From positions 1 through 15,840 of IMG/VR virus record IMGVR_UViG_3300033892_000023: 15,840 bases of DNA. One strand, 5' to 3'. Under the pieces are notes generated by a model. The model searched no databases, was not told the origin of the DNA, and saw only the letters and a list, made by a program, of their open reading frames with translations. The position numbers and the translations under genes are program-made. This document shows positions 444 to 15,840 of the stretch, piece after piece (position 1 is the first letter of the stretch; each line of letters starts with the position of its first letter).

Positions 444-461
444 AATTATTATATTTACAAA

Positions 462-508: not shown

Positions 509-577
509 TTTTACTCTTTGATCTCATCATATTCAATTCGTAAAGTATATATTTGTCATAATTTGAGTTACAAATAT

Positions 578-1036
578 ATGCAATTACAATTTAGAATAGA
601 AGAAGCGAAAAGTAAAGAATTAATAAAATTTGTAAGAATGTTGATAGATTTCTATCACTCTCAAGGAATGCCTTTGGGTGGCGGAGCTGGAAAAAATAGC
701 AGATATTTTATGTATATTGCTAACGACAGTGAGCAAGATTTTATTGTAGCAGTAGCATGGCTCCATGACAATACGCCATTCCGTTACATAGCTCAAGAAT
801 ACAAAATTCCAGATAATAAAAGTTATTTTATTAGAAGAGTTACAAAAACTGTACCGGGAGATTATGACGTTAATTTTCTAGTTGACTTATCTAAAAAACT
901 AAAAAGTGATGGATTTGAAGTACTTTGGACACTTGGATTTCCAGAACATTCTAACGCTTTATATAAGAAGACAGGCTTTGTTGAAGTTGGAAAAACAAAT
1001 AGAACTGGACATCCAATTTTTGTAAAAAAATTATAA
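578..1036 (+). CDS. GNAT/GCN5-family acetyltransferase (SIRV ORF154-like), 152 aa
   Basis: C-terminal GNAT motif B-like HSNALYKKTGFVEVG. The ATG at 578 lies 23 nt after the G of a GTCATAA promoter motif, so it is preferred over TTG 518. Size and synteny fit ORF154. Confidence 0.75.
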   Translation: MQLQFRIEEAKSKELIKFVRMLIDFYHSQGMPLGGGAGKNSRYFMYIANDSEQDFIVAVAWLHDNTPFRYIAQEYKIPDNKSYFIRRVTKTVPGDYDVNFLVDLSKKLKSDGFEVLWTLGFPEHSNALYKKTGFVEVGKTNRTGHPIFVKKL

Positions 1037-1312
1037 CTTATGTTTTTTAATTTTATTTGCCACATAGACAGATTCAATTACTGCAAGAAGTGTTTCAAGT
1101 TGACTATCATCTTCTATAAGCATTCCAAAAAAATAACCAAAGAAAATAATTAAAGAATCCATACTTATTTTTTCATCTTTGTAGCTTTCTAGTATATCGT
1201 AAAAAGCATATTCTAAATAACTTACTTGTTTTTCTATAATTTTAAGTGAGTTTTCATCTGGATGAAAAGTTTCTTTGAAAACTTCTATTATTTTTTCTAA
1301 GCCTTTGTCCAT
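1031..1312 (-). CDS. Hypothetical protein, 93 aa, helical with one hydrophobic stretch (LIIFFGYFFGMLI)
   Basis: ATG start and its own TTAAATTTGTCATAAT promoter motif on the minus strand (1350-1335). It fills the gap between the GNAT gene and hjc, with a 6 nt convergent overlap. Confidence 0.7.
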   Translation of the reverse strand: MDKGLEKIIEVFKETFHPDENSLKIIEKQVSYLEYAFYDILESYKDEKISMDSLIIFFGYFFGMLIEDDSQLETLLAVIESVYVANKIKKHKL

Positions 1313-1334
1313 ACTTATCTATATAAAAATTTTC

Positions 1335-1368
1335 ATTATGACAAATTTAAACATATATATGTCATAAT
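1335..1368. promoter_or_regulatory. Back-to-back GTCATAAT promoters for ORF93 (minus) and hjc (plus)
   Basis: ATTATGACA (1335-1343) and TGTCATAAT (1360-1368) form an inverted repeat around a 16 bp AT-rich core. Confidence 0.65.
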
Positions 1369-1384
1369 TTTTAAGTTTAATTTG

Positions 1385-1750
1385 ATGAATTTTAGACAAT
1401 CTGGAAAATATTATGAGTATAAAACTTTAGAATTTTTAGAAAAAAATGGCTATAAAGCTATAAGAATTCCAGTTTCTGGAATTGGAAAACAACCGCTTCC
1501 AGATATTATCGCAACTAAGGATAATACAATTTTTCCAATTGAAGTTAAATCAACTTCACAAAATTATGTTGTAGTTGATAATTTTCAAATTGATAAATTG
1601 TTTAAGTTCTGTGAGATATTCAATTTTTGTAATTGTAAACCGTTAATACTAGTTCATTATAAAAAATATAAAAATGTCATAATATATAATTTGAGTCAAG
1701 ATGTCAGAGAAAAAATTAAAATCAAATTTACCTTCAGAGCTAACAGCTAA
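1385..1750 (+). CDS. hjc: Archaeal-type Holliday junction resolvase (SIRV ORF121-like), 121 aa
   Basis: Hjc motifs SGKYYE, RIPVSG, PLPDIIA and IEVKS (PD-(D/E)xK). The ATG at 1385 gives 121 aa. Confidence 0.93.
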   Translation: MNFRQSGKYYEYKTLEFLEKNGYKAIRIPVSGIGKQPLPDIIATKDNTIFPIEVKSTSQNYVVVDNFQIDKLFKFCEIFNFCNCKPLILVHYKKYKNVIIYNLSQDVREKIKIKFTFRANS

Positions 1751-1910
1751 ATTGTATTTAGCGTTAGACGATTTAACTATGGCATTAGCTACTTGTGATG
1801 ATGAAAATATTAGGAAGAGTGAAGTTTTTCAAAAAGCTCTAGAAGTTGTAAAAATTGTCAAAGAAATGAGAAATGCTAAAATAAAAACTGATGAAGAAGA
1901 AAAATCCTAA
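1701..1910 (+). CDS. Small rudiviral protein (SIRV2 ORF69-like), possibly ribbon-helix-helix-like
   Basis: 69 aa, overlapping the hjc 3' end by 50 nt. It has its own GTCATAA motif at 1676, 25 nt before the ATG, and a T-run follows the stop. Confidence 0.75.
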   Translation: MSEKKLKSNLPSELTAKLYLALDDLTMALATCDDENIRKSEVFQKALEVVKIVKEMRNAKIKTDEEEKS

Positions 1911-2290
1911 ATTCCAATTTTTTTCAAGTTAAAGAGATATCAAGTTTGGGATAACTCTTTTCATCTAAAATTTTTTTCTTTATAAATCTCTTTACGCTCT
2001 TTCTTTGCGTAAAATTACGTTAAGAAAAATAAAAATATCGAGAGATAAGAGTTTAAAAAGATTTCTTGTAAACTAACGCGTTTGGTTTATATACTTATCA
2101 TTACAATTTGTTACGCAGTAAGCAAAATAAAAGATCATTAGATGAATTGAAAGAAAGAGATTATAAAAAATAGTGACAAAAAATGTAAATAAAAAAATCG
2201 AAAAACAAAAAAGTTTTTACTTCTTCAGTTGAAAACTTCAAAAAAAGAAAAAAGATTTTTACATAAAATAATTTTTACTTTTACAACAAC
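1911..2290. ncRNA. Candidate structured non-coding RNA or cis-element in the long central intergenic region
   Basis: The longest ORF-free gap in the window. It has a hairpin TTTACGC/GCGTAAA (1991-2013) and several long-range complementarities. I recall a conserved ~260-310 nt RNA being proposed in rudivirus genomes, but cannot confirm it maps here. Confidence 0.4.
1917..1925 (+). terminator. Oligo-T archaeal terminator after hjc/ORF69
   Basis: T7 run at 1918-1924, just after the stop at 1910. A second T-rich tract lies at 1971-1981. Confidence 0.45.
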
Positions 2291-2324
2291 ATTTATAATT
2301 TTATAATATACACATGATAATAAT

Positions 2325-5300
2325 ATGAGTTTCTTATTAAATCTTGGAGATTTAGGTACATTTTTTTCAGATGAGCTAACAGCATTAGAAAATTTTGCAA
2401 ATTTCTTAAGCTCTGATTTTATAAACTTTTTTAGTGCAGTAGTTAATGATATTGAAAATGTTGTAAGTTTCTTAGGTCAAGCAATTGGTGATATTCCAAC
2501 TTTTATGCAAAAAATTGCTAATAATTTCTTGCAAATTCTACAAAATTTTGCACAAACTGCAATTCCAGTAGTTTCAGGATTTTTAACATTTCTTGAACAA
2601 CAAATTATAAATGTATTTCAAGATTTGTCTTCTTTAGCTTCTACATTTATTAATGATGCATATTCATTTTTACAAGGTGTTGTAAATGCATTTGCAAATT
2701 TAATAAGTACAATAGTTCAAGATTTTCTAAATAATTTTGGTCAAAATATGAAACATATTAGTTCTGCAATTTCTCAAGTTACTCAATTTTTAACTCCATT
2801 TATCGCTCCAGTCACTTTAGGAAAATTTTTGCCAGCAATAATAGATAAATTAGCTGAAATTTTGCCAGAAGTTGAAATAGATTTAGCGCCAGTTGGCTTA
2901 GGCGGAAAAATTCCAATTAACTTTGGAGAAATTGTAAAAGCTTTCGCAGAAACTTCAGTTGATTTTTTAAATGAAGTAAGAGTAGAAATACAAACTACGC
3001 TTAAGGAGTTTATAAAAGAGCCATTTATTTCAGATTTTAAAATTACTGCGAGAGAAATATTTAATGAAATTGGACTTGGAGATTTACCCTTTGCTGATCC
3101 ACCATTTAGATTAATTGCAAATTGGGTCGGTTCAAGATCATTTTCTGAAATTAAAGATCATCTCAGAGAAACAATACTATTGACCGGATTTCCGGCATGG
3201 TTTACTGATGCTTATCTAGAATCTCCAGTTAATGACTTTATACCTAGAAATCCACTTTTTAGACCAGTAAATATAAGAGATGTAATTTTAGCCTCACAAT
3301 ATGGAATTTTAGATATTAGTTCAGTTTCTCAATATGCCGAAAATAATTTGATAACTCCAAAAACTGCTAAATTAATGTATAATAATCAAACTGCAAGACT
3401 TTTGCAAAGAGCAGTTGAGGAAGGTATAAGACAATTTGTTATTTCTCCAGAAAAAGCTTATCAAGAAATTATAAATAATATAAATTTAGCTGGAAAAGAC
3501 TTATATCTAAAAGTTTTCTCATTAGAGTATAATTATGCAGTTCAAAGAATTGTAAGACAATTTTTAAGATCACTTTTATCAAGAGCATTAACTAATTTTG
3601 GAAGACCATACATAGATTTAAAGTATTTAGAATCTACAGTTCAAAAACTATTTAAAGAACTAAATTATCCTGAAGAAGTCCAAAGCGTTTTTAACGTGAT
3701 GATTGAACAATCTCAAATAGTTTACACTAATCAATTACTTTTAACACAATTAGAACAAATTACTAAGTTAGGAATATTTGACGAAAAGAAGATAAAAGCA
3801 GAATTAAAAGCTAATAATTTCAATGAACAAATAGCACTTACAATTTTAAATTATGAACTCCAATATGTACAATTACAATATATTCTAAAAGAATTTCAAT
3901 TTAAACTTCAAAATTACATTATTAGTTCAAAAGATGCAGAAAAAGAGTTAAAGAAATTGGGCTTTGATTCTTCTATAATCTCTGAGATAATTTTTGAATA
4001 TCAAACTGCACCGTTAACAAAATATCAAATATCTCAAATTGAGAGTTTAGCAAAGAAAGGATATTTATCAGTTGATGAAATTAAAAAACAATTACATTCG
4101 TTAGGCATAATAAGGGAATTTGAAGACATATTTATCAATTACACAAATCAAGAAATTCAAATATCATCAACTTTAAGTATTGCAAAAGAACAATTAAGAA
4201 ACTTCTTAATAGATTCGAAAACTGTAGAAAATGAATTAAAAGCATTAAAAATTAACGAATATCTGATAAACGAGATAATTCAAGAAGAATATAACATAAA
4301 TATTGCTAAATTACAATTATCATATATAGAAACTTTAGCTAAGAATTTATATTATGATCAAACCCAACTATCTGGAGAATTAGCAAAACTTTTGAAAGAT
4401 AAAACTGCAATAGATCTTTATGTTCAAAGATTTTATTATGAATATGTATTTCCAAAAATTGTTAATTATTACGTTAGTTTAGCAAGACATGGTATAATTA
4501 CAGATGTTTCAAAATTGTCTAAAGAAATTGTACAATATGAAATTCAGCCCGCAATACAAGTTTTCCAACTAACGACAGAACTAGAATATATAAAATCATT
4601 ATTGAAAGATTTACAAATTAAACCAACTGATGCTATAAACGAATTGGAAAAATTAGGAATGCAAAAAGATTTAGCTAATTTATTTGTACAAACTTATGTA
4701 CCAACATTTTTCAGTTTACATACTATAATTGGAAATATTATAGAAGGTCAACTTTACAAAGTCGGAAAAATTCCCGTGAATTTAGGAATTGCAGAACAAC
4801 AATTAAGACAACTAGGAATTCCAGATAATCAAATAAAAATAATTATTGAACAATATGCTTCTTCATTTGGCTTAGAAATTTGGAGAAAATTCTTACCTTC
4901 ATTAAGTACAATTGAAACCGCAATAAAGTATAATTATCCAGATAAACAATTAATTGATTACTCATTTATACCTTCTGAATTTCTAAATCTTTATAGTAAT
5001 TTATATCAACATGAACTAGTTGGTCAATATGTTCAATCGTTACGAACTGAATATATTCAACTTCTTACTTATGGAGTTCAAAATATCCAACTTGAAAGTT
5101 TGTTAAAGCAATATGGAATAAATGAAACATTATTAGGAGTTTTCAAATTATCCGCACAAATTAGAAAAATATTAACGACTTACCAAGAACTTTATATTAC
5201 GCCATCTAAAGCACTTTCTATTGCTGAATATATATCAAATCCGACGCAATTATTACAAAAAGTATTTAGCGAATTTCAAGTTCCTTCAGATCTGCAAAAT

Positions 5301-5501
5301 ACTTATCTTGAGTATGCAAGAAATAGGAGACTTAGGACGTACGTAAACGACATAATTTCAACAATTAATTTACTATTTGAAAGACATAAAATAGATTTAA
5401 ATACTGCACAATCATATTTACAACAATTGAAAAAATATGGACTGACAGATGAAGAAATACAATTAATATTGTTAAATTGGCAATTACGTGCAAACTATTA
5501 A
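2325..5501 (+). CDS. Large virion structural protein, terminal tail fibre (SIRV ORF1070-like), 1058 aa
   Basis: Size, synteny, an amphipathic N-terminal helical region and ~48 aa helical repeats (e.g. ELKKLGFD, QLHSLGII, ELEKLGMQ). Confidence 0.85.
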   Translation: MSFLLNLGDLGTFFSDELTALENFANFLSSDFINFFSAVVNDIENVVSFLGQAIGDIPTFMQKIANNFLQILQNFAQTAIPVVSGFLTFLEQQIINVFQDLSSLASTFINDAYSFLQGVVNAFANLISTIVQDFLNNFGQNMKHISSAISQVTQFLTPFIAPVTLGKFLPAIIDKLAEILPEVEIDLAPVGLGGKIPINFGEIVKAFAETSVDFLNEVRVEIQTTLKEFIKEPFISDFKITAREIFNEIGLGDLPFADPPFRLIANWVGSRSFSEIKDHLRETILLTGFPAWFTDAYLESPVNDFIPRNPLFRPVNIRDVILASQYGILDISSVSQYAENNLITPKTAKLMYNNQTARLLQRAVEEGIRQFVISPEKAYQEIINNINLAGKDLYLKVFSLEYNYAVQRIVRQFLRSLLSRALTNFGRPYIDLKYLESTVQKLFKELNYPEEVQSVFNVMIEQSQIVYTNQLLLTQLEQITKLGIFDEKKIKAELKANNFNEQIALTILNYELQYVQLQYILKEFQFKLQNYIISSKDAEKELKKLGFDSSIISEIIFEYQTAPLTKYQISQIESLAKKGYLSVDEIKKQLHSLGIIREFEDIFINYTNQEIQISSTLSIAKEQLRNFLIDSKTVENELKALKINEYLINEIIQEEYNINIAKLQLSYIETLAKNLYYDQTQLSGELAKLLKDKTAIDLYVQRFYYEYVFPKIVNYYVSLARHGIITDVSKLSKEIVQYEIQPAIQVFQLTTELEYIKSLLKDLQIKPTDAINELEKLGMQKDLANLFVQTYVPTFFSLHTIIGNIIEGQLYKVGKIPVNLGIAEQQLRQLGIPDNQIKIIIEQYASSFGLEIWRKFLPSLSTIETAIKYNYPDKQLIDYSFIPSEFLNLYSNLYQHELVGQYVQSLRTEYIQLLTYGVQNIQLESLLKQYGINETLLGVFKLSAQIRKILTTYQELYITPSKALSIAEYISNPTQLLQKVFSEFQVPSDLQNTYLEYARNRRLRTYVNDIISTINLLFERHKIDLNTAQSYLQQLKKYGLTDEEIQLILLNWQLRANY

Positions 5502-5518
5502 ATAAATTTGTCATAATT
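5502..5518 (+). promoter_or_regulatory. GTCATAA-type promoter of the ligase gene
   Basis: ATAAATTTGTCATAATT, with the G at 5510, 23 nt before ATG 5533. The spacing matches the other copies. Confidence 0.65.
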
Positions 5519-5532
5519 TTTAGTTTTTACAT

Positions 5533-6348
5533 ATGAGCGTAAACTTATGTCATTATGAAGCGGAAAATATAAGTTATAAAGACTTACAAAATTTACAAGG
5601 AATGATATATTATGAAATTAAGTATGATGGAACTCATGTATGTCTGAAATATGAAAATGAATTAAAGATTAATACTAGAAAAGATATACCGCATGATAAA
5701 GGATTTCAAGAACTTTTTTTAAAAGTTCCAAATATTGAGGAAGTTATAAATTATATAAAGAAAAATAATCAATATATTATTCATGGAGAACTTGTACATA
5801 AAAAGACATCAGCATTACAAATCCATACAAATGAAATTCCGGAATTTATCATATATGATGTCTTTGACAAAGAGAACAATAGATATTTAAGTCCGCTTGA
5901 AGTTGATAGCGAAATTTATTATTGGTATCCTGAAATTTGTTTAGATTTAGATGACATAGTTCACGATATAACTAAAGAAAGACTTGAAGGATTAGTAGCT
6001 AAAATTTATAATCCAAAATTTACAAATTGTAAAGAAGGACAAAATTTCAATTTATGTCTTTACAAATACAAACCTTACTTTTCTGTACTTGGAGTAATAT
6101 TTAAACCAATTAGAAGAGAAATTGATGTTAGACAATTATCATTTTTATTAGGAGAAATAGATAATGATTTAAAGAATAATAAAGATGAATGGTATAGAAA
6201 TCATCAAGATCTTTACAAGTTCTTACTTTCAAATAAAGATAAAATAATACAGATACTACAAAACGAAAACTTCATATTACAAATTGAGAAAGAAACACAT
6301 TTAAACATTAAGAAAATTAAAGAATACATTATGAACTTCAAAAGATGA
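5533..6348 (+). CDS. ATP-dependent ligase-family nucleotidyltransferase, probable RNA ligase, 271 aa
   Basis: Ligase NTase motifs in order: I YEIKYDGTH (K30), Ia NTRK, III IHGELV, IIIa FIIYDVF, IV LEGLVAK, V LYKYKP. A ~90 aa helical-looking C-terminus follows rather than an obvious OB fold. Confidence 0.8.
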   Translation: MSVNLCHYEAENISYKDLQNLQGMIYYEIKYDGTHVCLKYENELKINTRKDIPHDKGFQELFLKVPNIEEVINYIKKNNQYIIHGELVHKKTSALQIHTNEIPEFIIYDVFDKENNRYLSPLEVDSEIYYWYPEICLDLDDIVHDITKERLEGLVAKIYNPKFTNCKEGQNFNLCLYKYKPYFSVLGVIFKPIRREIDVRQLSFLLGEIDNDLKNNKDEWYRNHQDLYKFLLSNKDKIIQILQNENFILQIEKETHLNIKKIKEYIMNFKR

Positions 6349-6364
6349 CAACAATTACAACTTA

Positions 6365-6412
6365 CTATATACATTATATTATGTATAAGTTATGTGTGTT
6401 TATTTTTGTCAA
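6365..6412 (+). promoter_or_regulatory. ORF566 promoter: palindrome TATACAT-N6-ATGTATA (6368-6387), then TTTATTTTT and GTC
   Basis: Read directly. It is nearly identical to the element upstream of ORF269 on the minus strand. Confidence 0.65.
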
Positions 6413-6429
6413 TCCATTAATTTTTTCAT

Positions 6430-8130
6430 ATGAGTTTGCCATATAAAGTACGTTTTAAATTGCCACTTGAGTTTCTGACACTGCAAGACTGGAATAACTT
6501 TGTGCAAAATTTATTATTTATTAATCAATATGGTCCTGCTAAACTTCTCCAGTATTATCAAAATGGCAATTTTCAGAATCTGGATGAAGTTATTGCAAAA
6601 TATTTATATGTTTCAGCGTTAAAAGCTAAAGGTTATAATGTTCTTCATAATTTATCACAACCTCAAGCTTATACATTTGGTGAAGGAAATCAACAGCCAT
6701 TTAAAAGCATGGCAAATAAGCCAATAATTCAACTGAAGTCTGTAATATTTCCAATTCTAAATTTTCAGATACAATTATCTAAAGTTAGTAAACAATTACA
6801 ATTATTAATTCCTAAAGTAATTTCTAAAATTGTAACTCCAAATCAAATTGCTGGAACACAATTTACATTTTCAGGAACTTCAAATGTACAAACATTAATA
6901 GAAGATTATTTAGATCCATCATATTTACAAACTTGGAGAGAAATAATAATACAAAATCTAGGCAGTTCTGTAGTTCAAATTAATAATTCTATCTATCTAA
7001 TGCCTAAAAATTGTTTAAAGATAACTGTAAGTTCACCAAGTGAAATTCAATTAACCGCACAAACTCCAACTTTGCTAAGTGAAGAAATTGAATTTGTTGG
7101 AATTCCTATAACATTTTATACAATTACAATAACAAATTCACAGAGTGATCCAACTCCTTCACCATTTCAACAATTGTTAAATTTGAATTTATCATCTATA
7201 TTATCTAGCTCGTCTCAACTTTTAAATTTACAATTTTGCTTAGATGTTAATTGCAATACTCCATTATATGCATGGATTGAAAGTTTCAATTCTAATTTAT
7301 CAAGTGTTTATATTTGGATTAATTTGCCAACTTCAATTCCGGCTAATTCATCAATTACAATTTATATGTTTGTTAGAAATTCAATTCAGTATCCTTATAC
7401 TGGAATGAGACCAGATTTATCCGCGAGTTATGCACAATATGATAATGGAAAAAATATATTTTTAATTTATTTTAATGGTAATGAACCATTATCTAATTTT
7501 AATAATCAAGGAAATTCATTAACTCAAATATCTACAACTGGGCCGTTAGGAAATACAATAAATGCAATTTATATAAGTGGTTATAATTCACATTTTGGAT
7601 TTGTATATACTGCAAAATCTATACCAAATCAAGCAGTAATTGCAGAATCATCAGTGATAGATCTAGGAAATCAAACAGGCGGATTAAATGCAGATAATGG
7701 ATTTTCTTCTATAGTTGATAGTACTTCAATTGGTAATTTAAACGCAATAAGTGTGGATATGGGGTATTCTGGTTCTTATTTTTCTAATGATTACTTTATA
7801 AGTGGAACTCAAACTTCTGATTTAAACCCAGCAGGAACTGCAGTATCACAGTGGCTTTATGCATGGGTCGTATATTCTGGAACATCAAGTACTTCATGGT
7901 ATGGATGTATAGCACCACAACTTTATAGTTCTTCAGGCGGTTATTGTGGTACAGTTGGCAATAATCCATTTTCTAGTTCTTCTCAACTATATTTAGGTAT
8001 AATTGGTAGTGTAAATTCTAGTTATCAGTGGCAAACTGCATGGAATTTTATGAGATTAAGAGCTTATCCTCCAAACGGTACAATGCCTTCAAATTCTCAA
8101 CCGCAAAAAACAATAATTCTAGTAAGTTGA
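6430..8130 (+). CDS. Virion structural protein (SIRV ORF564-like) with a C-terminal DUF2341/lectin-like beta domain, 566 aa
   Basis: Synteny and size. The DUF2341-like segment reads ITITNSQ..PTPSPFQQLL...LYAWIE...IWINLP.SIPANSSITIY...YDNGKNIF, and the C-terminus is S/T/N/G-rich. Confidence 0.8.
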   Translation: MSLPYKVRFKLPLEFLTLQDWNNFVQNLLFINQYGPAKLLQYYQNGNFQNLDEVIAKYLYVSALKAKGYNVLHNLSQPQAYTFGEGNQQPFKSMANKPIIQLKSVIFPILNFQIQLSKVSKQLQLLIPKVISKIVTPNQIAGTQFTFSGTSNVQTLIEDYLDPSYLQTWREIIIQNLGSSVVQINNSIYLMPKNCLKITVSSPSEIQLTAQTPTLLSEEIEFVGIPITFYTITITNSQSDPTPSPFQQLLNLNLSSILSSSSQLLNLQFCLDVNCNTPLYAWIESFNSNLSSVYIWINLPTSIPANSSITIYMFVRNSIQYPYTGMRPDLSASYAQYDNGKNIFLIYFNGNEPLSNFNNQGNSLTQISTTGPLGNTINAIYISGYNSHFGFVYTAKSIPNQAVIAESSVIDLGNQTGGLNADNGFSSIVDSTSIGNLNAISVDMGYSGSYFSNDYFISGTQTSDLNPAGTAVSQWLYAWVVYSGTSSTSWYGCIAPQLYSSSGGYCGTVGNNPFSSSSQLYLGIIGSVNSSYQWQTAWNFMRLRAYPPNGTMPSNSQPQKTIILVS

Positions 8131-8137
8131 TGTAAAA

Positions 8138-9673
8138 ATGTCTTCAACTTACTGCGTTCAATTACCAGAAAATCTTTTATTATTGTCTATGACTACTGTA
8201 AATCCTGTAAATTTTACATCTTTACAATTTTCATTATCTGTAAATTCATTAGTTATTTTTCTATTTTCAAAATATCCATTTAATTCTGGTTATTACAATA
8301 ATTTTTGTATAAATCAAGATGAATTTGGATTTGCACAAGTTGGACAAACTTTCAATATAGATCTATCAAATTATCAAGGATATTATATGCTAATGTTAAT
8401 TTATCCACAAGGAATTAATTTAAAGAGTTCTAAAAGTTGTGTCTCGATTCAAGGTTTAACTATGACTTTTCAGAATACAACAATTTCACCAATTACAAGT
8501 GAAACTGTAATTAACAATTTTGATGGTCAAGAAGAAACCGGATTTTGTACATGTTATGATGGTCAAAGTCATGTAATAGAAATTCTATGTAATAATTCAA
8601 ATTATGTTTCTGCTATTTTATTAAATAATTTAAATAATCAATTACTAATAATGACTTGTCAAGGATTTGTATATGAAAATAATACAACTGTAGGATTTAT
8701 AACGCCAAGTACATGTGGTACTTTTGGTTCATATTTAACAGCAGAAATAACATTTATTGCAAATCAATCAGTTATAGATTTTCTAAATAATAATAATATC
8801 TCTTATAATATTTTATCATCTACTGAATGTCAACCAACTTATAAATTATTACCATGTACTTTACCATGTAAATCGTTTTACCAAATTACAAAATTATTAT
8901 CTCCACCAACTAAATATTCTATAATATCTTCAAAATTATGGAATGAAATTGTACAAGACCTATATCTAACTTATAGTGTATTTAAATATATTAATTATTT
9001 AACACAATATGCATATTTAGACTATATATATCCTACAATTTTAGACTTTTATAATTTCTATGAGAACTTTCAACCATATCCATTTACTCAATTATTGTAT
9101 GCACAAAAAGGAATTCCATTAACTGTAAACGATTTTAACAAATTAATAGATGCAATTGTAAAATTAGCAAATGAAAATGATATAAAATTGAAAAAAGGAC
9201 TTTCTTATGTTCAGCGTGATCAAGTCGTAAGAGCTTCACAATTTGCAAATATAGTTTATAATGTTAATCAATTTCTAACTTTTAATTATAATCAATATTT
9301 TCTATTAGATTGTAATGGATCAATTTTCTCGAATTTATTGAATAAACAAAATACATTTTTAAATGTCATAATTAATAATTTAGTAGCTTCACTTAATATT
9401 CCTTCAAACGTTTATATTAAAAACTTATTAATATATACTTCAAATCAAACTATTTATAATTATGGTGTAATAAATAAATTAATAATTAATATTAATAACG
9501 GCGAAATTTATCTTAATGGAAATTCATTTATAAATTTTCTACTTATAACTGACAATAATAACAATATTTATGTAAATGATAATTCAGTAATAAACAATTT
9601 AATTTGTATTAGCAATACTGGAACTATAAATATCTCACCAAATGCAATAATTAAAAATAATCAATGTGCTTAA
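8138..9673 (+). CDS. Conserved rudiviral protein (SIRV1 ORF510-like), probable virion or adhesion protein with an Asn-rich C-terminal beta-solenoid, 511 aa
   Basis: Starts 7 nt after the ORF566 stop (operon). Cys-containing N-terminal domain and C-terminal repeats such as INKLIININNGEIYLNGNSF / INFLLITDNNNNIYVNDNSV / INNLICISNTGTINISPNAI. Confidence 0.7.
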   Translation: MSSTYCVQLPENLLLLSMTTVNPVNFTSLQFSLSVNSLVIFLFSKYPFNSGYYNNFCINQDEFGFAQVGQTFNIDLSNYQGYYMLMLIYPQGINLKSSKSCVSIQGLTMTFQNTTISPITSETVINNFDGQEETGFCTCYDGQSHVIEILCNNSNYVSAILLNNLNNQLLIMTCQGFVYENNTTVGFITPSTCGTFGSYLTAEITFIANQSVIDFLNNNNISYNILSSTECQPTYKLLPCTLPCKSFYQITKLLSPPTKYSIISSKLWNEIVQDLYLTYSVFKYINYLTQYAYLDYIYPTILDFYNFYENFQPYPFTQLLYAQKGIPLTVNDFNKLIDAIVKLANENDIKLKKGLSYVQRDQVVRASQFANIVYNVNQFLTFNYNQYFLLDCNGSIFSNLLNKQNTFLNVIINNLVASLNIPSNVYIKNLLIYTSNQTIYNYGVINKLIININNGEIYLNGNSFINFLLITDNNNNIYVNDNSVINNLICISNTGTINISPNAIIKNNQCA

Positions 9674-9675
9674 TA

Positions 9676-9721
9676 TAGAACTTTTACATATTCGGTTTTA
9701 ATTTTAAATTAAAAAGTTCTA
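9676..9721. terminator. Inverted repeats in the convergent intergenic gap, a possible bidirectional terminator
   Basis: TAGAACTTTT (9676-9685) pairs with AAAAGTTCTA (9712-9721). TTTTAATTT-T-AAATTAAAA (9696-9714) is a second palindrome. Confidence 0.4.
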
Positions 9722-9742
9722 AATTTGACCTCATAATGTAGT

Positions 9743-10285
9743 TCATAACTTGCAAAATACAAATTCTTTATTATCATCAGTTATAAAAGTTAGAACTGTT
9801 CCGTATAATTTTCTCATTAATTCAAAACGATTTTCTGTCCAATCATGAATAGCTATACAATATTGTTTGTATTTTTGTAATTGAGAAAAATCAAGTTTAC
9901 TTTCACTTCGTTCACCGCTTTGCGGTTCACTTCGTTCAGCCTTAACTTCAAGTAACTTGGCTTCACATCCCTCACAATCCATAACTAAAATATCAGCATT
10001 TGGATATTCTTTTCCAGTCCATTCGCCGTAAACTTCAACTTTATCACAAATATTGAATTCTTTACAAACCTTTTCTTTAAATCGTTTATTCAGCTCATCA
10101 CTTTTTTCATAACCAATTATTTTCTTTGCACCTTTAAGTAAAAAATATAAAGCTGAACTACCGCAATCATTTCCAATTATTATAATTGTCTTATCTTTAA
10201 CATCTAATTTTCCATATGCTAAATCAAATTCGTGCCAATAACAACATTCTAATTTACAAAAATAATCTTTATAATTTATACTCAT
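9743..10285 (-). CDS. SAM-dependent methyltransferase, FkbM-like (SIRV ORF158b-like), 180 aa including an apparent 20 aa insert
   Basis: Motif I-like IIIIGNDCGSSALYF, GAKKIIGYE and VMDCEGCE (FkbM K-D-EG-E-like). An SD-like GAGGCG lies upstream. Confidence 0.82.
   Translation of the reverse strand: MSINYKDYFCKLECCYWHEFDLAYGKLDVKDKTIIIIGNDCGSSALYFLLKGAKKIIGYEKSDELNKRFKEKVCKEFNICDKVEVYGEWTGKEYPNADILVMDCEGCEAKLLEVKAERSEPQSGERSESKLDFSQLQKYKQYCIAIHDWTENRFELMRKLYGTVLTFITDDNKEFVFCKL
9902..9961. repeat. 60 bp GC-rich in-frame insert of nested direct repeats and palindromes
   Basis: TTCACTTCGTTCA occurs at 9902-9914 and 9926-9938. Palindromes are ACCGC-TTT-GCGGT (9914-9926) and CAAGT-A-ACTTG (9949-9959). 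28 of 60 bases are G+C. Confidence 0.7.
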
Positions 10286-10294
10286 AATATCGCC

Positions 10295-10477
10295 TCAATC
10301 GAATAATCTAGCATTTTTTTCATAAAGACTATTACATGTTGAATAACAATCATTAACGTCATCTGGAAATTCTTTTTTCTCGCATTCCTCATAACATTCA
10401 TGAACAATCTTATTTAAACATATAAAATCTGCACATTCTCTAAATTTTTCTATAAAATAACTCCACATTTTTATCAC
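10295..10477 (-). CDS. Small Cys-rich hypothetical protein (60 aa; Cx4C, Cx3C, Cx3C)
   Basis: The GTG start overlaps the ORF269 TGA stop (GTGA coupling; alternative ATG at codon 4). The stop sits next to the SD of the methyltransferase. Confidence 0.65.
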   Translation of the reverse strand: MIKMWSYFIEKFRECADFICLNKIVHECYEECEKKEFPDDVNDCYSTCNSLYEKNARLFD

Positions 10478-11283
10478 GAACTTATAACTTCAAATAATGC
10501 ATAAACTTTTGCTTTTCCAGTAGCCCATACGTAAACATTTGCGGGATTATTTACATGTATTTCCAAACTATCATTTTGTAGAATTGGAAAATTATTATAT
10601 AATTGATTTCCAATATAAACTATATAATTACTAAGATTTTGTAAAATTATTCTTACAGTTTCTATAGATGGACCGGAATAAAGTGGACTTGGAGTTGTAG
10701 AAACATCAAGTTGAAGACCTTCAATAGTCGGCGGTGATAAATACAAACTTAATTTATTTATTGTATTAGCTAAACCAACTGTAGCTAAATATACATAGTC
10801 AAGTACATATTCTATAGAATTCGCAATAACATAAATTGCATTTTGTAATGAAATTCCTAATTTTTTAGAAATTGAATTTATCAAAATATAAAATGACTCA
10901 TAAAAGTTATCAAAATTTTGTGTAAGTGTATTACTAATTTGATTAGGTAATTTGATAATTGAGTAATATAATTGTTCATTTGAATATAAAATTAAATTTA
11001 TTTGTTGTTGAGCAGTTGAAATAAATCCAGCGATATAAATTGGATCTAGTTCTGTTAAAACTGGCTGACCAGCTATATAAATTTCATCATAGAAAAATCC
11101 AGAACTAGCATTTATAGAGCCTGGAATTGTTAGATTTCCATTTTTTAAAATTGAAGTTAATGCATTACCTCCAGTTTCATAAAGCTGAATTAAAAGAAGA
11201 TTTGCGGTATTCCACATTGAAGAAGTTAAACGCTGAAATGGTGAAGCTAATAAACTTGAAATTGAAGCATACGTTATACTCAT
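10474..11283 (-). CDS. Conserved rudiviral protein (SIRV ORF269-like), paralogous to the N-terminal part of ORF566, probable virion component
   Basis: 269 aa, synteny, sequence blocks shared with ORF566 and a shared promoter element. Confidence 0.78.
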   Translation of the reverse strand: MSITYASISSLLASPFQRLTSSMWNTANLLLIQLYETGGNALTSILKNGNLTIPGSINASSGFFYDEIYIAGQPVLTELDPIYIAGFISTAQQQINLILYSNEQLYYSIIKLPNQISNTLTQNFDNFYESFYILINSISKKLGISLQNAIYVIANSIEYVLDYVYLATVGLANTINKLSLYLSPPTIEGLQLDVSTTPSPLYSGPSIETVRIILQNLSNYIVYIGNQLYNNFPILQNDSLEIHVNNPANVYVWATGKAKVYALFEVISS

Positions 11284-11306
11284 ATGTTTATATACTTAAA
11301 TTGTAG

Positions 11307-11349
11307 TAAAAATAAACTCATAACTTATATATCATATTATGTATATAGC
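11307..11349 (-). promoter_or_regulatory. ORF269 promoter, near copy of the ORF566 upstream element
   Basis: The minus strand reads CTATATACATAATATGATATATAAGTTATGAGTTTATTTTT, against CTATATACATTATATTATGTATAAGTTATGTGTGTTTATTTTT at 6365-6407. Confidence 0.65.
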
Positions 11350-11414
11350 TTGATCTAATTGATCTTATACCGAATTAGCAATATTTTAATTTGTCATGAA
11401 CTTGAGAAATAATT

Positions 11415-12020
11415 ATGAAAATCTTTACTTTTGTTGGATTTACAAAGCATTTAGAAGAATTGGATTTTGATTATGTTGTAGTAGATAAAACTTTTAATGA
11501 TTTAACTCCCCAGTTAAACGCAAAATTTACAGATAAGATAATCTGGAATGAAACAAATAGTGACATAAGATGGGTCAGAATTGCAAAACAACTATTAAAA
11601 ATTCTAGAAATAGCAAAAAAAGAAGATGACGACATATTCGCTATAGTAGATAGTGATCTAATTGTTCCAAATTTGAGAAATATTGATCCTAACGATAAAA
11701 TATTGACTTTGTGCTATTGGCTTTATTATTCGTGGGCTAATGAGATTAGGCCATTTTGTTCAGGAACAAACTACATTTTCAACTTTGAACAAATTCCATA
11801 TTTAGAATATGCAATAAACGAATATATAAAATTGGAATATTATAAAGAAATACCAGTTGATATATTTCTACATGATCATATCTTGCATATAAATGTACTG
11901 AAATTAAGAACTATACATTATGTAAAAACTCCAGAAGGCGAGAAAAAAATGGAATTTAAACTAGAAGATATTCCCCAAATTGTAAAGCATATTCCAGAAT
12001 TTGTTTTAATATCTTGGTAA
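11415..12020 (+). CDS. Glycosyltransferase, GT-A-like (SIRV ORF176/209-like), 201 aa
   Basis: VVVDKT first-strand motif, FAIVDSDLIV DxD motif, CSGTNYIF and PVDIFL. A GTC promoter motif at 11393 lies 22 nt before the ATG. Confidence 0.72.
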   Translation: MKIFTFVGFTKHLEELDFDYVVVDKTFNDLTPQLNAKFTDKIIWNETNSDIRWVRIAKQLLKILEIAKKEDDDIFAIVDSDLIVPNLRNIDPNDKILTLCYWLYYSWANEIRPFCSGTNYIFNFEQIPYLEYAINEYIKLEYYKEIPVDIFLHDHILHINVLKLRTIHYVKTPEGEKKMEFKLEDIPQIVKHIPEFVLISW

Positions 12021-12021
12021 A

Positions 12022-13104
12022 ATGAGTGGTGAGACTAAATTGTCAAATATAATTTATTACGTTTATCCACAACATCATGACGTTAGTTTCAAATTTGTAG
12101 CTAAAGAACATATAAAAATGTTAAAAGAAAAATATACAGTTTATGAAATTCCAACTTTATCATTCTATCAATTTACCCCATTCAGAAATCCAATTTCTAT
12201 AATCCATCCATTTTTTTACAGTATGTGGCATTGGGGAAAAGTAGAATTTTCATTCTTTGAACAATATAGATCTAAAGTTAGTGCAATTGTTGGAGTTGAA
12301 GTAGCTGACAGTGATAGAATTTCAGAAAAATTCATAGATTATGCTAATAATTACGCTGATAGACTAATTGGAAATTCTGAATGGACATTAAACGCTTTTA
12401 AAAATTCTGGACTAAAAATTCCAATTTATAAAGTTGTACATAATTTTAATGAGAGATTATTGGCAAAAGATAATGAGTTAAAAATTGATGAACAAGTTAA
12501 ATATATTGAAAAAGTTAAAAATGAGAAGAAAATAAAACTAATCTTCATTTCCCTTTGGCATTCTGATTTTAGGAAAGGGGCCGATTTATTTCATGTTATA
12601 GCAAAGGAATTACAAAAAGAAAGAGATGATATCTATTTCCTAGTAAAATCAGGCGGGCCTAGAACAGATTTTCAAGATTTGAAAATGTTTAATCTCACGG
12701 GAAATACAGACTTTGATAATATAGTTAAAATGTATAGAATATCAGATTTGTATTTATTAACTAGTAGAGGCGGTAGTTTTGAATTAAATGGACTAGAGGC
12801 ATTTATATCTAAAATTCCAACAATTGCCACAAAAGGCGGGGCATGGGAAGAATATTTTCCTAACACTTTGAAAGATTTACTAGTAGATTCTTGTAGATTT
12901 CCAGACGTTTTATGGAATAATCCAATTCATATTGGTCAAGGAGTAGAAATGTGCATGGATAAAGCAGTAGAAAAAATATTAGAAGTTTTAGATAAATTAG
13001 ATGAATATAAGGCAAAAATTGAAGAAAACTATAACTTTTGGTTAGAAAACTTTAGTTATGAAACTGTAAAAAAACAATTATTTAACGCTTTGACTTTTAC
13101 TTAA
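12022..13104 (+). CDS. Glycosyltransferase, GT-B fold (GT4-like; SIRV ORF356-like), 360 aa
   Basis: NSEWT, RKGADL, DLYLLTSRGGSFELNGLEAF and PTIATKGG motifs. 1 nt gap after the upstream GT. A TTG at 12040 behind an SD-like GGTGA is an alternative start. Confidence 0.88.
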   Translation: MSGETKLSNIIYYVYPQHHDVSFKFVAKEHIKMLKEKYTVYEIPTLSFYQFTPFRNPISIIHPFFYSMWHWGKVEFSFFEQYRSKVSAIVGVEVADSDRISEKFIDYANNYADRLIGNSEWTLNAFKNSGLKIPIYKVVHNFNERLLAKDNELKIDEQVKYIEKVKNEKKIKLIFISLWHSDFRKGADLFHVIAKELQKERDDIYFLVKSGGPRTDFQDLKMFNLTGNTDFDNIVKMYRISDLYLLTSRGGSFELNGLEAFISKIPTIATKGGAWEEYFPNTLKDLLVDSCRFPDVLWNNPIHIGQGVEMCMDKAVEKILEVLDKLDEYKAKIEENYNFWLENFSYETVKKQLFNALTFT

Positions 13105-13455
13105 AAAATCATAAATTTTTAGTAATGCTTCAATATTTTCTTCTCTCTTTAACTTTTTTATCTCTCTTATTATTTCATCATAAATATTATTAATTTTAAT
13201 CAATTCCAAAACTTCTTTAATTAGCAGAATTGAAAACCTATGAGATTGTTGAACTATAACATAAATTTTTCTTGCTAATTTTTCAGCATCAAATTTGTCA
13301 TATTCAATTGAAAGTTCAACATCTGAATATTTTGCGGTAACATTATTTTCATAAAGAGTCAAAAAAAGTTTATATTTGTCTTCTACAATTACTTCAGCTT
13401 GATTATCATTTATCTTAACTATCACGTTTTCTCTTAACTTAAACTCCTTAGTCAT
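13078..13455 (-). CDS. Hypothetical protein, ~125 aa (MTKEFKLRENV...), beta-rich N-terminus and helical C-terminus
   Basis: The ATG at 13455 lies 23 nt after the G of a minus-strand ATAAATGTCATAAAA motif (G at 13478). It overlaps the GT stop convergently. Confidence 0.7.
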   Translation of the reverse strand: MTKEFKLRENVIVKINDNQAEVIVEDKYKLFLTLYENNVTAKYSDVELSIEYDKFDAEKLARKIYVIVQQSHRFSILLIKEVLELIKINNIYDEIIREIKKLKREENIEALLKIYDFLSKSQSVK

Positions 13456-13469
13456 CAATATAATATATA

Positions 13470-13525
13470 TTTTATGACATTTATATTTCTTTAAATTTCG
13501 AGTAAATCTTAAATTGGTCATAAAA
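13470..13525. promoter_or_regulatory. Divergent GTCATAAAA promoters for ORF125 (minus) and the transporter-TGT operon (plus)
   Basis: TTTTATGAC (13470-13478) and GTCATAAAA (13517-13525), each preceded by a TATA-like T/ATAAAT on its own strand. Confidence 0.62.
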
Positions 13526-13538
13526 TCGGTTCAATAAT

Positions 13539-14729
13539 ATGGAATTTAAAAGAGAAAGTTCCGGAATAATTAAAAGCTTTAATGTCCTAGATATTTTTTC
13601 CATAAATCTTTTGTATATGGGAATCTTAAGTGGAATAAGTTATCCACTTTTTGTCTCTGAAATGATGAAAAATGTAAACTTATTATTTGCTATTTTAATA
13701 GCATCAGTCTTTGGAATTCCACTTTTAGTAATGTATTATTTACTGACTAAGAAAATTCCGCTTAATGGAGGAGATTATGCTTATATTCGCTCAACATTTT
13801 CTCCAAAGTTTTACACAATTTTCGGAATTTCATTATGGTTAATTTACGTATTTTCAGCTCCAGTATTATCTGACTTAGTACTTCTAAATTTCAATATTCC
13901 GATATTCGAGAAATTCTTAATTTCAGAATTATTATTTGCTATTGCTTTACTTAGCATAGTTAAAAAGTCAATTTATGCATATATTGTAGACGGAATTGCA
14001 ATTTTACAAATAATTGTTTCTTTAATTCTGCCAATTTCAAGTTTCCATTTTCAAGCCCCAAATTTCATATTATCAAACACTTTACTTTCAGCTTTACTAT
14101 TTGATTTAGCCATGTTTTTGTTTCTAAATGCAATTAGCTACATAGCTGGAGAGACAAAAAATGTAAATAAAAGCATGAAAATTGGTTATTTTGGAAGTTA
14201 TTTAGTTGTTACTGTATTAGCAATATTAGACAGTTATTCAAATTTAAATATATTATTTCTGTTAATGCCGATATGGTTTATGAGTTATATTTTTGTAACC
14301 TCATTAATTCAAAGTAGATTAGTTCAAAATTTAGCATTTGATAAAATCTTACCTGAAAAATTTGCAAAAATAACGCCTAACGTTTTGTTATTAATCTTTA
14401 TTGCTGATACAATTGCAAATATCTTAGAAAATCTACTAAACTTTTCAATTTCATTTGGATTTGACGGTCTATTATTCATCTTCTGGAACTTTATAATTGT
14501 TAGTTTTGCATTTCTAAAATTAACAAACAAAAAACTATTATTTTCAATAGTAATGATTAGCTTAATTTTACAGATCTTCTTATTCTTTTATTTAGGATTA
14601 CAAAATTCAGTATTCTATAACTTTGTAATTGAAGGAAATCTCCTATACGCAATATTGAGAATTGCAATAATGCCAATTGTAGGAGGAATTATTTACTTGT
14701 TAAGGAGAAAAATTATAAACGCTGAATAA
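13539..14729 (+). CDS. APC-superfamily (amino-acid permease-like) transporter, multi-pass membrane protein, 396 aa
   Basis: N-terminal FKRESSGIIK typical of Sulfolobales permeases, APC motifs IPLNGGDYAYI and YIAGETKN, and about 11 hydrophobic segments. Confidence 0.85.
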   Translation: MEFKRESSGIIKSFNVLDIFSINLLYMGILSGISYPLFVSEMMKNVNLLFAILIASVFGIPLLVMYYLLTKKIPLNGGDYAYIRSTFSPKFYTIFGISLWLIYVFSAPVLSDLVLLNFNIPIFEKFLISELLFAIALLSIVKKSIYAYIVDGIAILQIIVSLILPISSFHFQAPNFILSNTLLSALLFDLAMFLFLNAISYIAGETKNVNKSMKIGYFGSYLVVTVLAILDSYSNLNILFLLMPIWFMSYIFVTSLIQSRLVQNLAFDKILPEKFAKITPNVLLLIFIADTIANILENLLNFSISFGFDGLLFIFWNFIIVSFAFLKLTNKKLLFSIVMISLILQIFLFFYLGLQNSVFYNFVIEGNLLYAILRIAIMPIVGGIIYLLRRKIINAE

Positions 14730-14731
14730 AG

Positions 14732-15667
14732 ATGAAATTGATATTTGGCATTTCTAGTTCAAGAAGTTATTTTTTTAAAACTAATTTTCCAGTCTTAATT
14801 AATCAGTTGAGATTTAGAAAAAAAACATGGAAAAATGAAACATGGATTGATAGTGGCGGATTTCAAATTATAATGCATAACTTAAAAATTTCTGTAAATG
14901 ATGTCTTGCAAAAGTATAAAAGTGTTAATGCTTACGCATTTTTTTCTCTCGATATTCCTAGCGTTTTTGCACCTCTTGACAAACGGAATTTTGAATATTT
15001 TGAGTATCTCTACACAAAAATTGAATGGATAGAAAAAATTATACCAGTTTTACATATTTATCCACTTCAAGATTTGGATAAAGCTATTGATTTTTACAAA
15101 CAATACAGTTATTATTTTGCAATTGGTGGAATAATGACTTCTAGCAAATTAAGAGTTTTACAATATACATTTCCGTGGATTTATTATATAAAAAGAAAAG
15201 TATCTTATCTTCACGTTCTCGGTATATCATCTCCATATTTTTTACAAATTTTTGATAATATGCAAAGCATGGATACCGCATTTTGTTCAATAATTTCAGC
15301 ATTTAAAGAAATAATTTGGTTTAATGGATCTAGGAGATATGTTGGAAATATGAAAACAAAAAGGGAAAGATATAAAATTACAAAAGAAGAAAAAGAACAA
15401 TTGTTTGAATTTTTAGATAAACATAACTTTCCATTTGAATATGATTTAAACAACAGAAAAATTTTAGAAATGATAAATGTATACATGTTACTGTATAATA
15501 ATTGGAGAATTAAGAATAAGTATACAGAATATGCTGATAAATTAAGAAAAATGGGACTAGATAGTTTGACAAGTGAGTTAATTAGAAATTATAAAATTGC
15601 TAGTGAAATATTGAAAGAGAAAAAGAATAAAAAGAAAAAAGAAGATGAATTAGAAACAGAGATATAA
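14732..15667 (+). CDS. TGT-fold guanine transglycosylase (tRNA-guanine transglycosylase or DpdA-like), 311 aa
   Basis: Motifs IDSGGFQ (D40), SLDIP (D74), IPVLH, AIGG, LHVLG and SMDT (D181). There is no CxCxxC Zn site and no PUA domain. It starts 2 nt after the transporter stop. Confidence 0.85.
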   Translation: MKLIFGISSSRSYFFKTNFPVLINQLRFRKKTWKNETWIDSGGFQIIMHNLKISVNDVLQKYKSVNAYAFFSLDIPSVFAPLDKRNFEYFEYLYTKIEWIEKIIPVLHIYPLQDLDKAIDFYKQYSYYFAIGGIMTSSKLRVLQYTFPWIYYIKRKVSYLHVLGISSPYFLQIFDNMQSMDTAFCSIISAFKEIIWFNGSRRYVGNMKTKRERYKITKEEKEQLFEFLDKHNFPFEYDLNNRKILEMINVYMLLYNNWRIKNKYTEYADKLRKMGLDSLTSELIRNYKIASEILKEKKNKKKKEDELETEI

Positions 15668-15684
15668 AAATTCACATTTTCATA

Positions 15685-15840
15685 TCATTCTTCTTCTTCA
15701 TCAACATCATCATCATCAACATCATCATAACCAAAAACAATATTGATAGCTTCCTCTATTTTATCTTTAAATTTTGTTTTTATTTCGTCTGGACTTAATA
15801 ATTGGTGAACTTCATTACTTAAAATCTTTGAAACTGTATC
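15685..15840 (-). CDS. C-terminal 51 aa of a hypothetical protein with an acidic tail (partial, enters from the window end)
   Basis: Hand translation gives DTVSKILSNEVHQLLSPDEIKTKFKDKIEEAINIVFGYDDVDDDDVDEEEE*, with the stop at 15687-15685. Confidence 0.65.
   Translation of the reverse strand, partial: DTVSKILSNEVHQLLSPDEIKTKFKDKIEEAINIVFGYDDVDDDDVDEEEE
15698..15727. repeat. Tandem 15 bp duplication TCATCAACATCATCA x2 in the acidic tail
   Basis: Exact copies at 15698-15712 and 15713-15727. Confidence 0.7.

Follow-up and report, generated by a model that had tools for sequence, protein, structure and literature searches.

Sixty additional base pairs in the methyltransferase gene of an archaeal rudivirus are a genuine in-frame insertion. 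They consist of a 36-bp block plus a nested, hairpin-forming, 24-nt module. The module is one member of a dispersed family, of the form RAA + GTG...C-NNN-G...CAC, that we found at nine non-homologous rudivirus loci. At eight of these, homologous sites in relatives are "empty" and differ by exactly 24 bp. This gives the unexplained 12-bp indels of these viruses a defined sequence to study.

Results

A 60-bp in-frame insertion in a rudivirus methyltransferase gene

The DNA analysed, hereafter the window, is a 15,840-nucleotide fragment of a rudivirus (positions 1 to 15,840 of IMG/VR record IMGVR_UViG_3300033892_000023). Its closest relatives are the Yellowstone isolates SIRV8, SIRV9 and SIRV10, with about 93% nucleotide identity in the gene concerned. 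Features are listed in Table 1. The encoded protein matches phrog_5108 ("SAM-dependent methyltransferase", E 1e-81) in two stretches, split by the insert. An AlphaFold model (pLDDT 86), compared using Foldseek, matches class I SAM methyltransferases, such as METTL5 and PH1948, at E 4e-8 to 1e-7. The expected features of this class, a Rossmann-like fold with a glycine-rich SAM motif and an acidic motif after beta-4, are present in the prediction. Pfam gave no hit.

Table 1. Positions of features in the window (labels beginning with L denote contigs and homologues recovered in our searches)
Position	Strand	Feature	Sequence or remark
9743..10285	-	SAM-dependent methyltransferase gene (180 aa)	Orthologue of SIRV2 ORF158a and SIRV1 ORF158b
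9902..9961	-	60-bp in-frame insert	AKLLEVKAERSEPQSGERSE; boundary can slide by 5 nt because GTGAA stands at both junctions
9926..9961	-	36-bp block, first insertion step	EAKLLEVKAERS
9908..9931	-	24-nt palindromic module, second, nested insertion step	AGTGAACCGCAAAGCGGTGAACGA in the register of covariance model R1
9914..9926	-	Hairpin, core of the module	ACCGC-AAA-GCGGT
9902..9913	-	Downstream copy of the direct repeat	GAACGAAGTGAA; upstream copy at 9926-9937
9949..9959		Palindrome	CAAGT-T-ACTTG
10001..10015	-	Empty site 2 of the methyltransferase gene	GGAAAAG^AATATCCA; homologues L049, L050 and L051 carry a 24-nt module here
10289..10483		Window-only segment (192 bp)	Holds a 60-aa Cys-rich ORF
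722..742	+	Empty site in ORF 518..1036	Contig L077 carries a module here
1701..1723	+	Empty site at the start of ORF 1701..1910	Isolate V60 (OM401713) carries a module here

A preliminary description, made from the sequence alone, had reported a G+C-rich, 60-bp insert of stacked mini-palindromes after the DCEGCE motif. We first sought to determine whether this was correct. The observation is confirmed. The coding strand reads exactly as described and TGAA recurs at spacings of 15, 12, 9, 15 and 9. The 12-mer GAACGAAGTGAA occurs twice, at an offset of 24, where shuffled sequences give an expectation of 0.06 occurrences. Similarly, CCGCAAAGCGGT occurs once, against 0.00 expected. Both palindromes described are present. 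The G+C content of the 60 bp is 46.7%, compared to 26.0% for the rest of the window and 25.9% for the rest of the gene. Only two G+C-rich hairpins, with a 5-bp stem and 3-nt loop, exist in the whole window, where shuffles expect 0.54.

Alignment with SIRV9, SIRV11, V60, SIRV2 and SIRV1 showed one clean 60-column gap, right after DCEGC. All 40 phage records listed lack the insert, as do SIRV1-11 and most metagenomic homologues. An anchor-based comparison also gave a length change of -60 in SIRV8, SIRV9 and SIRV10. Two conditions that would have undermined the observation, named in advance, were that all orthologues contain the extra residues or that the insert is an assembly artefact. The former is excluded by the alignments. 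To examine the latter, we turned to independent Logan assemblies. A 339-nt contig of sequencing run X1, at depth 22, spans positions 9839-10177 with no differences. Contigs of more divergent, insert-less relatives occur in the same run and in three other hot-spring runs, with joints that skip exactly 60. Hence, the insert is not an artefact.

The insertion comprises 36 bp plus 24 bp

The preliminary description interpreted the insert as serial insertion of tiny elements, in five steps of 12 bp, with duplication of GAA at the junctions. To examine this, we used a word-based protein search that returned 116 homologues. Their lengths fall into four classes: 158/160 aa with no insert, 170/172 aa with 12 additional residues at this position (site 1), 178/180 aa with 20 additional residues at site 1, and 166/168 aa with eight additional residues at a second site. 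The protein alignment, and the underlying DNA, show that the +12 forms carry only EAKLLE[VI]KAERS, that is, the first 36 bp. The +20 forms carry the same 36 bp and a further 24 bp, nested near the 3' end. The +8 forms carry 24 bp at site 2, located 15 codons upstream between GEWxGK and (E/Q)YPNTD. Among 116 protein clusters and 35 gene sequences, only 0, +36 and +60 bp were seen at site 1; no +12, +24 or +48 bp state was found. We conclude that the steps are 36 and 24, rather than five of 12. Note that, in the register of the preliminary description, the second step equals 12 new nucleotides (9914-9925) plus a 12-nt duplicate.

A metagenome-wide scan, with a 29-nt degenerate pattern, found the 36-bp block seven times and always at this site of this gene. 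No other copy was present in viral contigs or in the genomes analysed. The palindrome CAAGT-T-ACTTG is broken, without compensation, in L057 and L062, where AAG is changed to AAA. Furthermore, the block does not fold better than shuffles (z -0.8 to -1.0). Hence, the mini-palindromes of the first 36 bp are not conserved. Even so, between carriers, the block is more conserved (91%) than the flanking 60 nt (81%) or the backbone (84%). The copy in the window is identical, at 36 of 36 positions, to those of L043, L045, L058 and L060, whose backbones are only 85-86% identical to the window. This argues that the block spread recently across lineages.

The 24-nt module is a dispersed hairpin element

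When codon-aligned, the 24-nt units from site 1 (window, L043, L044, L056 and L008) and site 2 (L049, L050 and L051) share the form AGT Gnn nnn Cnn AGY nnn nnA CRA. All carry a hairpin at the same positions. At site 1, this is ACCGC-AAA-GCGGT in the window, ACCGC-GTA-GCGGT in L043, ATCGC-GTA-GCGAT in L044, GGCAC-GAA-GTGCC in L056, and GTGATGAAC-AAA-GTTCATCAC in L008. At site 2, it is CGAGC-AAA-GCTCG in L049, CAAGC-AAA-GCTTG in L050, and CGAAC-AAA-GTTCG in L051. The DNA fold of the window hairpin has an energy of -4.8 kcal/mol (z -2.7).

We next searched for further copies, using a regular expression, two scans of viral contigs, and covariance model R1, built from an alignment of the window module with nine other copies. 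The unit was found in SIRV10 ORF29; just after the start codon region of the V60 homologue of window ORF 1701..1910; directly after the ATG of the SIRV10 homologue of SIRV9 ORF26, and also in L074, L078 and L080; in an intergenic region of L064; in an intergenic region of SIRV4, SIRV5 and SIRV11, where the outer pair has changed from G-C to A-T; two codons into a small ORF in L075 and L079; and in a 171-aa ORF in L077. Together with methyltransferase sites 1 and 2, this makes nine loci. Copies at different loci are 23/24 or 19/24 identical. Examples of the former are L008 site 1 against SIRV10 ORF29, and L049 site 2 against V60. At eight of the nine loci, homologous sequences of related viruses align with an exact 24-column gap. 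Two of these empty sites, at 722-742 and 1701-1723, are in the window.

Over ten copies, the inner five stem pairs are Watson-Crick in 50 of 50 cells. Twenty cells have changes on both sides and none has a change on one side, such as G-T. No shuffle, out of 500, reaches this score and sliding the partner destroys it. Positions G2, T3, C10, A13, G14, A21 and C22 are invariant.

In the window, the covariance model had one match, the module in the insert (35.1 bits, E 1.6e-6). No copy was found in SIRV9, SIRV8 (partial record), SIRV1, SIRV2, SIRV3 or seven lipothrixvirus-like records; about 45 rudiviral records and contigs were scanned with the model. A 20-mer of the module hit one unrelated phage contig (L007), with YqaJ/RecT-type genes, which we treat as chance for a 20-mer in that collection. 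A degenerate module pattern, covering only subfamilies A and B with an AAA loop, was scanned over representative genomes of 185,579 prokaryote species. This gave one hit, in a Thermoleophilaceae MAG, where about four are expected by chance. There was no copy in the Sulfolobales representatives, so we see no host reservoir. Rfam gave no match to the insert.

Insertion sites

Six loci, with a close empty homologue, can be written as ...G^[RAA GTG...CAC]^AA... These are methyltransferase site 2, SIRV10 ORF29, V60, the SIRV10 homologue of SIRV9 ORF26, L075/L079 and L077. Junction ambiguity at these loci is 2-3 nt and no consistent target duplication is seen. The L064 locus fits less clearly, since its empty site reads ...TAA^ATC, and the SIRV4/5/11 copy has no empty homologue. 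Site 1 is the exception, with 8-13 nt of ambiguity. Here, the target (GAACGA^AGTGA) resembles the 5' end of the module, and this produces the 12-13-nt direct repeat noted in the preliminary description. Hence, duplication of GAA at junctions is not supported as a general rule. All seven coding copies are in the sense orientation, although the reverse orientation is open in most frames. Five are in the frame AGT-GNN (S-x-E-Q-S-S-x-Q and variants) and two in the frame GAA-GTG, so the reading frame is not uniform. Three loci lie within the first six codons of a gene and two are intergenic.

The insert is scattered over the gene tree

To compare the insert with the history of the gene, we built a maximum-likelihood tree of 35 distinct gene sequences, with the insert columns removed. 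The window groups with the insert-less SIRV8/9/10 (support 100/99) and L008 groups with the insert-less L028 (97/92). One tight clade holds all three states: L019 (0), L060 (+36) and L043 (+60). The site 1 state needs at least nine changes. AU tests reject a single clade for any site 1 insert (p 1e-4), for the 60-bp forms (4e-4), and for the site 2 forms (0.017). The window and SIRV9 are identical for 106 nt upstream and 71 nt downstream of the insert, except for one adjacent synonymous site (TGT/TGC) where the window matches the carriers. Either the ready-made 60-bp allele was transferred into a SIRV9-like backbone, on a tract of roughly 64-90 nt, or SIRV8/9/10 lost it precisely between the GTGAA repeats. 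The excess conservation of the block favours transfer.

In the predicted structure, the insert begins as one helical turn (residues 107-111). It continues as a disordered stretch (residues 114-130, pLDDT below 50) between strand 99-102, with the DCEGCE motif, and helix 133-138. Site 2 lies in the loop before that strand. Both are places where extra hydrophilic residues should be tolerated.

Length differences are multiples of 12 bp

Gapped alignment, and an alignment-free anchor method, agree that every net length difference between the window and SIRV8, SIRV9 and SIRV10 is a multiple of 12. The values are 12 (three places), 24, 60 (two places), 120, 168, 192 and 324 bp. The 324 bp are the SIRV10 ORF29 segment and the 192 bp are a segment found only in the window. 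Several of these differences are intergenic or gene-sized, so reading-frame conservation alone does not explain the pattern. For ten in-frame indels all to be multiples of 12 by chance has a probability of about 1e-6. A simple rule, that total genome length is a multiple of 12, is not supported by published lengths. SIRV1 (32308), SIRV2 (35450) and SIRV3 (32995) leave residues of 4, 2 and 7, although record ends may be incomplete.

Discussion

The interpretation given in the preliminary description is partly supported. The 60 bp are a true insertion relative to orthologues, fit the rudiviral rule of 12-bp multiples, and arose by serial insertion, since natural intermediates carrying only the first 36 bp exist. 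The second part is, as suggested, a tiny palindromic element that recurs elsewhere. Conversely, five 12-bp steps and a general GAA junction duplication are not supported.

We are reasonably confident that the 60 bp are a nested, two-step insertion, at the DNA level, into a surface loop of the methyltransferase. Our data show the entry of a 36-bp block right after the DCEGC(E) motif, the entry of a 24-nt hairpin module inside that block, a dispersed family of 24-bp insertions at unrelated places in North American rudivirus genomes (in genes and between genes, mostly between a G and AA), strictly Watson-Crick covariation, and a distribution that disagrees with the gene tree. That only multiples of 12 bp are seen in these genomes is likewise shown, but as a pattern alone. 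The remainder is inferred. In this view, the module spreads by a DNA-level copy-and-paste process that needs its hairpin. A nicking-joining enzyme might recognise the hairpin, extruded on the single-stranded replication intermediates of these viruses, or the hairpin may guide template switching. This would explain why the stem is always perfectly Watson-Crick although its sequence differs between copies. Note that mobility is inferred only from distribution: no enzyme, donor-target intermediate or new insertion event was observed. The assembled 60-bp allele would then have moved between co-circulating viruses by very short-patch recombination, short-patch recombination being known for Sulfolobus, and so reached a SIRV9-like backbone. 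From the structural model, we infer that the insert is translated as a disordered loop and is probably tolerated rather than needed.

Some observations temper this view. The 36-bp block has no second copy elsewhere in our searches, no covariation and no significant fold, and its origin is unexplained. In the window, the module is flanked by a 12-13-nt direct repeat and this copy alone could also be read as duplication plus replacement. Scatter on the tree can also result from repeated precise deletion between the flanking repeats (the 5-nt GTGAA and the 13-nt TGAACGAAGTGAA), combined with recombination. Finally, a perfectly Watson-Crick stem could reflect selection on a functional DNA or RNA hairpin, rather than a requirement for mobility.

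We considered alternative explanations and regard each as unlikely. Growth of the 60 bp in place, by slippage and divergence of short units, is consistent with the exact direct repeat, the periodic TGAA and GTGAA at both junctions. However, the module occurs at eight other loci that lack such flanking repeats, the central 12 nt and the 36-bp block have no local template, G+C content is nearly double that of the surrounding gene, and the block is younger than the backbone. We consider this reading already disfavoured. Somewhat less improbable, though still doubtful, is that the hairpin is a selected signal, such as a binding site for a dimeric DNA-binding protein or an mRNA stem-loop that modulates expression, with insertion into genes a by-product. 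The covariation, the invariant positions, the uniform sense orientation at coding loci, and the positions near gene starts or between genes would fit. Conversely, presence and absence vary among near-identical viruses, SIRV9, SIRV1, SIRV2 and SIRV3 have no copy, the loci have nothing in common, and there is no Rfam family.

Escape from CRISPR, reportedly proposed for rudiviruses by Vestergaard et al. (2008), would fix indels that break protospacers. The Garrett 2015 review (PMC4390879), which cites that paper for the 12-bp indels, states that point mutations rarely defeat Sulfolobus type I-A interference and that multiple 12-bp indels arose when SIRV1 was passaged through hosts carrying matching spacers. 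In run X1, a contig joins a Sulfolobales-type CRISPR repeat end (...GGAATTGAAAG) to window sequence from 9975 onward. This protospacer would reach the site 2 insertion point, at 10008/10009, if at least 34 nt long. Even so, it does not overlap the 60-bp insert, which ends 13 nt before it, and no spacer spanning the empty site 1 was seen. Moreover, this idea concerns fixation rather than origin, and explains neither the palindrome nor the 12-bp quantum; we think it improbable. Least likely is a mini-intron, removed by the archaeal splicing endonuclease and a ligase, as the preliminary description speculated. The insert is in frame and hairpin-forming, and Peng et al. (2004) reportedly made a proposal of this kind for the 12-bp elements. 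However, predicted RNA and DNA folds (MFE and centroid folds for the window, L008 and L045) are plain stem-loops, without the two 3-nt bulges, 4 bp apart, of a bulge-helix-bulge motif. There is no Rfam match, carriers and non-carriers differ in their DNA, and the reading frame is kept through every variant. No RNA run was found to hold the sequence, so the intron idea is unsupported rather than excluded on present evidence, which rests on prediction for the folds.

The insertion resembles several known systems. Like the 12-bp indels of rudiviruses and lipothrixviruses (Peng et al. 2004 Mol Microbiol 54:366; Vestergaard et al. 2008 J Bacteriol 190:6837; summarised in PMC4390879), it is an in-frame indel of a multiple of 12 bp that varies between close relatives; the known indels lie mostly inside ORFs. 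Here, part of the indel is a sequence-defined, hairpin-forming unit recurring at nine loci, and the 60 bp can be split with natural intermediates. The review does not mention palindromic units and a paper on the Yellowstone SIRVs does not discuss indels. The resolution into 36 plus 24, and recognition of the 24-nt family, appear to be new as far as we could check, short of the two founding papers. REP/BIME elements mobilised by RAYT transposases, and IS200/IS605 single-strand transposition, involve short dispersed palindromes with a conserved 5' GTG-type head, a DNA hairpin, and insertion next to a short preferred sequence without target duplication. The module likewise has a GTG head and a hairpin and is dispersed at non-homologous loci. 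Its junctions fit the last feature at six loci, but less clearly at L064 and site 1. However, it is only 24 nt and sits in a virus, often inside coding sequence. No RAYT or TnpA gene is known in these viruses, and the rudiviral Rep is the only HUH-type enzyme known to us there. This is a resemblance in how the module may work, not membership. Rickettsia palindromic elements are also inserted in frame into coding genes and tolerated as extra surface peptide, but are bacterial and about 100-150 bp, whereas the module is 24 bp and encodes eight residues. Archaeal bulge-helix-bulge introns are likewise small, structured and within genes, but no such motif is predicted here and the polymorphism is in DNA. 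Quasipalindrome template-switch mutation (the Ripley model) would produce the concerted changes observed on both arms, without mismatched intermediates. It explains how a palindrome is kept perfect but not its appearance at new loci. The module is not a MITE, which has terminal inverted repeats, a target-site duplication and a length of about 50-500 bp, because it is 24 nt, the whole unit is one hairpin, and there is no consistent duplication.

A bolder possibility, which we hold only tentatively, is that the module is an actively mobile mini-element, among the smallest known. It would be copied into new G^AA sites, on single-stranded replication intermediates, by a hairpin-recognising nicking-joining enzyme. 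A role for the viral HUH Rep is conjecture. The module would then be one concrete source of the 12-bp-multiple indels. Cryo-EM papers report 12 bp of A-form DNA per capsid-protein dimer in SIRV2 and AFV1 (PMC5517147). That the 12-bp quantum, which would set the module's length, may be linked to this is also our conjecture.

Rudiviruses and lipothrixviruses have been known, for about twenty years, to vary by indels of 12 bp and multiples and, as far as the literature we surveyed shows, no mechanism has been established. Our results make that question directly testable. One such indel can be resolved into its steps and the intermediates still exist in nature. Part of it belongs to a hairpin family inserted at many unrelated sites. 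This provides a concrete substrate for biochemical tests, using oligonucleotides carrying GAAGTGATGAACAAAGTTCATCAC with Rep, resolvase or host nucleases, and for passage of isolates that carry the module (SIRV10 and V60). Our findings also indicate, with tolerance inferred from the structural model, that viral proteins at 80 degrees C tolerate hydrophilic loop insertions of 8-20 residues next to an active-site motif. In this window, the 12-bp quantum holds for every indel from 12 to 324 bp, including intergenic and gene-sized ones, and that points to a constraint beyond reading-frame conservation.

Length differences in multiples of 12 bp

Every net length difference between the window and SIRV8, SIRV9 and SIRV10 is a multiple of 12 bp (12, 12, 12, 24, 60, 60, 120, 168, 192, and 324). 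Note that this includes intergenic and gene-sized differences. One is a window-specific segment (net +192 bp against SIRV8/9/10), between the methyltransferase gene and the ORF269 homologue, that encodes a 60-aa Cys-rich protein with no PHROG match. Conversely, a whole small gene, SIRV10 ORF29 (net 324 bp, or 27 x 12), is present in SIRV10 and absent from the window. This gene carries a module of its own, encoding SDEQSSSQ. A 12-bp insertion, GAGTGGTGAGAC, stands right after the start codon of ORF 12022..13104 and is absent from SIRV8/9/10. While G+C-rich (58%), it is not palindromic.

The second G+C-rich hairpin of the window, TCCAG-AAA-CTGGA, also has an AAA loop. However, the covariance model does not score it as a module and it does not coincide with an indel. 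An exact 20-nt match of the window's module was found in L007, an unrelated phage contig carrying YqaJ/RecT-type genes. We judge this to be chance.

Coordinates of the features described
Feature	Sequence	Position	Strand
Anchors of net length differences	window	about 1020, 5365-5545, 6691-6793, 7448-8062, 8102-8128, 9902-9961, 10285-10544, 10848-10964, 11932-12107	
Window-specific segment	window	10289-10483	
ORF for Cys-rich protein	window	10295..10477	minus
12-bp insertion	window	12021-12035	
Second G+C-rich hairpin	window	1468-1480	minus
First stretch joined to CRISPR repeat ends	window	9975 to about 10012	+
Second stretch joined to CRISPR repeat ends	window	about 10500-10539	
SIRV10 ORF29	L055	3172-3496	
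Module near gene start	L075 (scanned sequence)	4033-4056	
Module near gene start	L072 (SIRV10)	9479-9502	
Module near gene start	L065 (V60)	15566-15589	
20-nt module match	L007	204-223	

CRISPR spacers and modules near gene starts

In sequencing run X1, contigs join Sulfolobales-type CRISPR repeat ends (...GGAATTGAAAG, and CTTTCAATTCC...GGATTATC) to window sequence. Hence, hosts in the same community carry spacers against this virus. The first protospacer has TCA just 5' of it and would reach the empty site-2 insertion point of the methyltransferase gene (10008/10009) if it is at least 34 nt long. Finally, three of the nine module loci lie within the first six codons of a gene. In these positions, a hairpin could affect translation of leaderless mRNAs.
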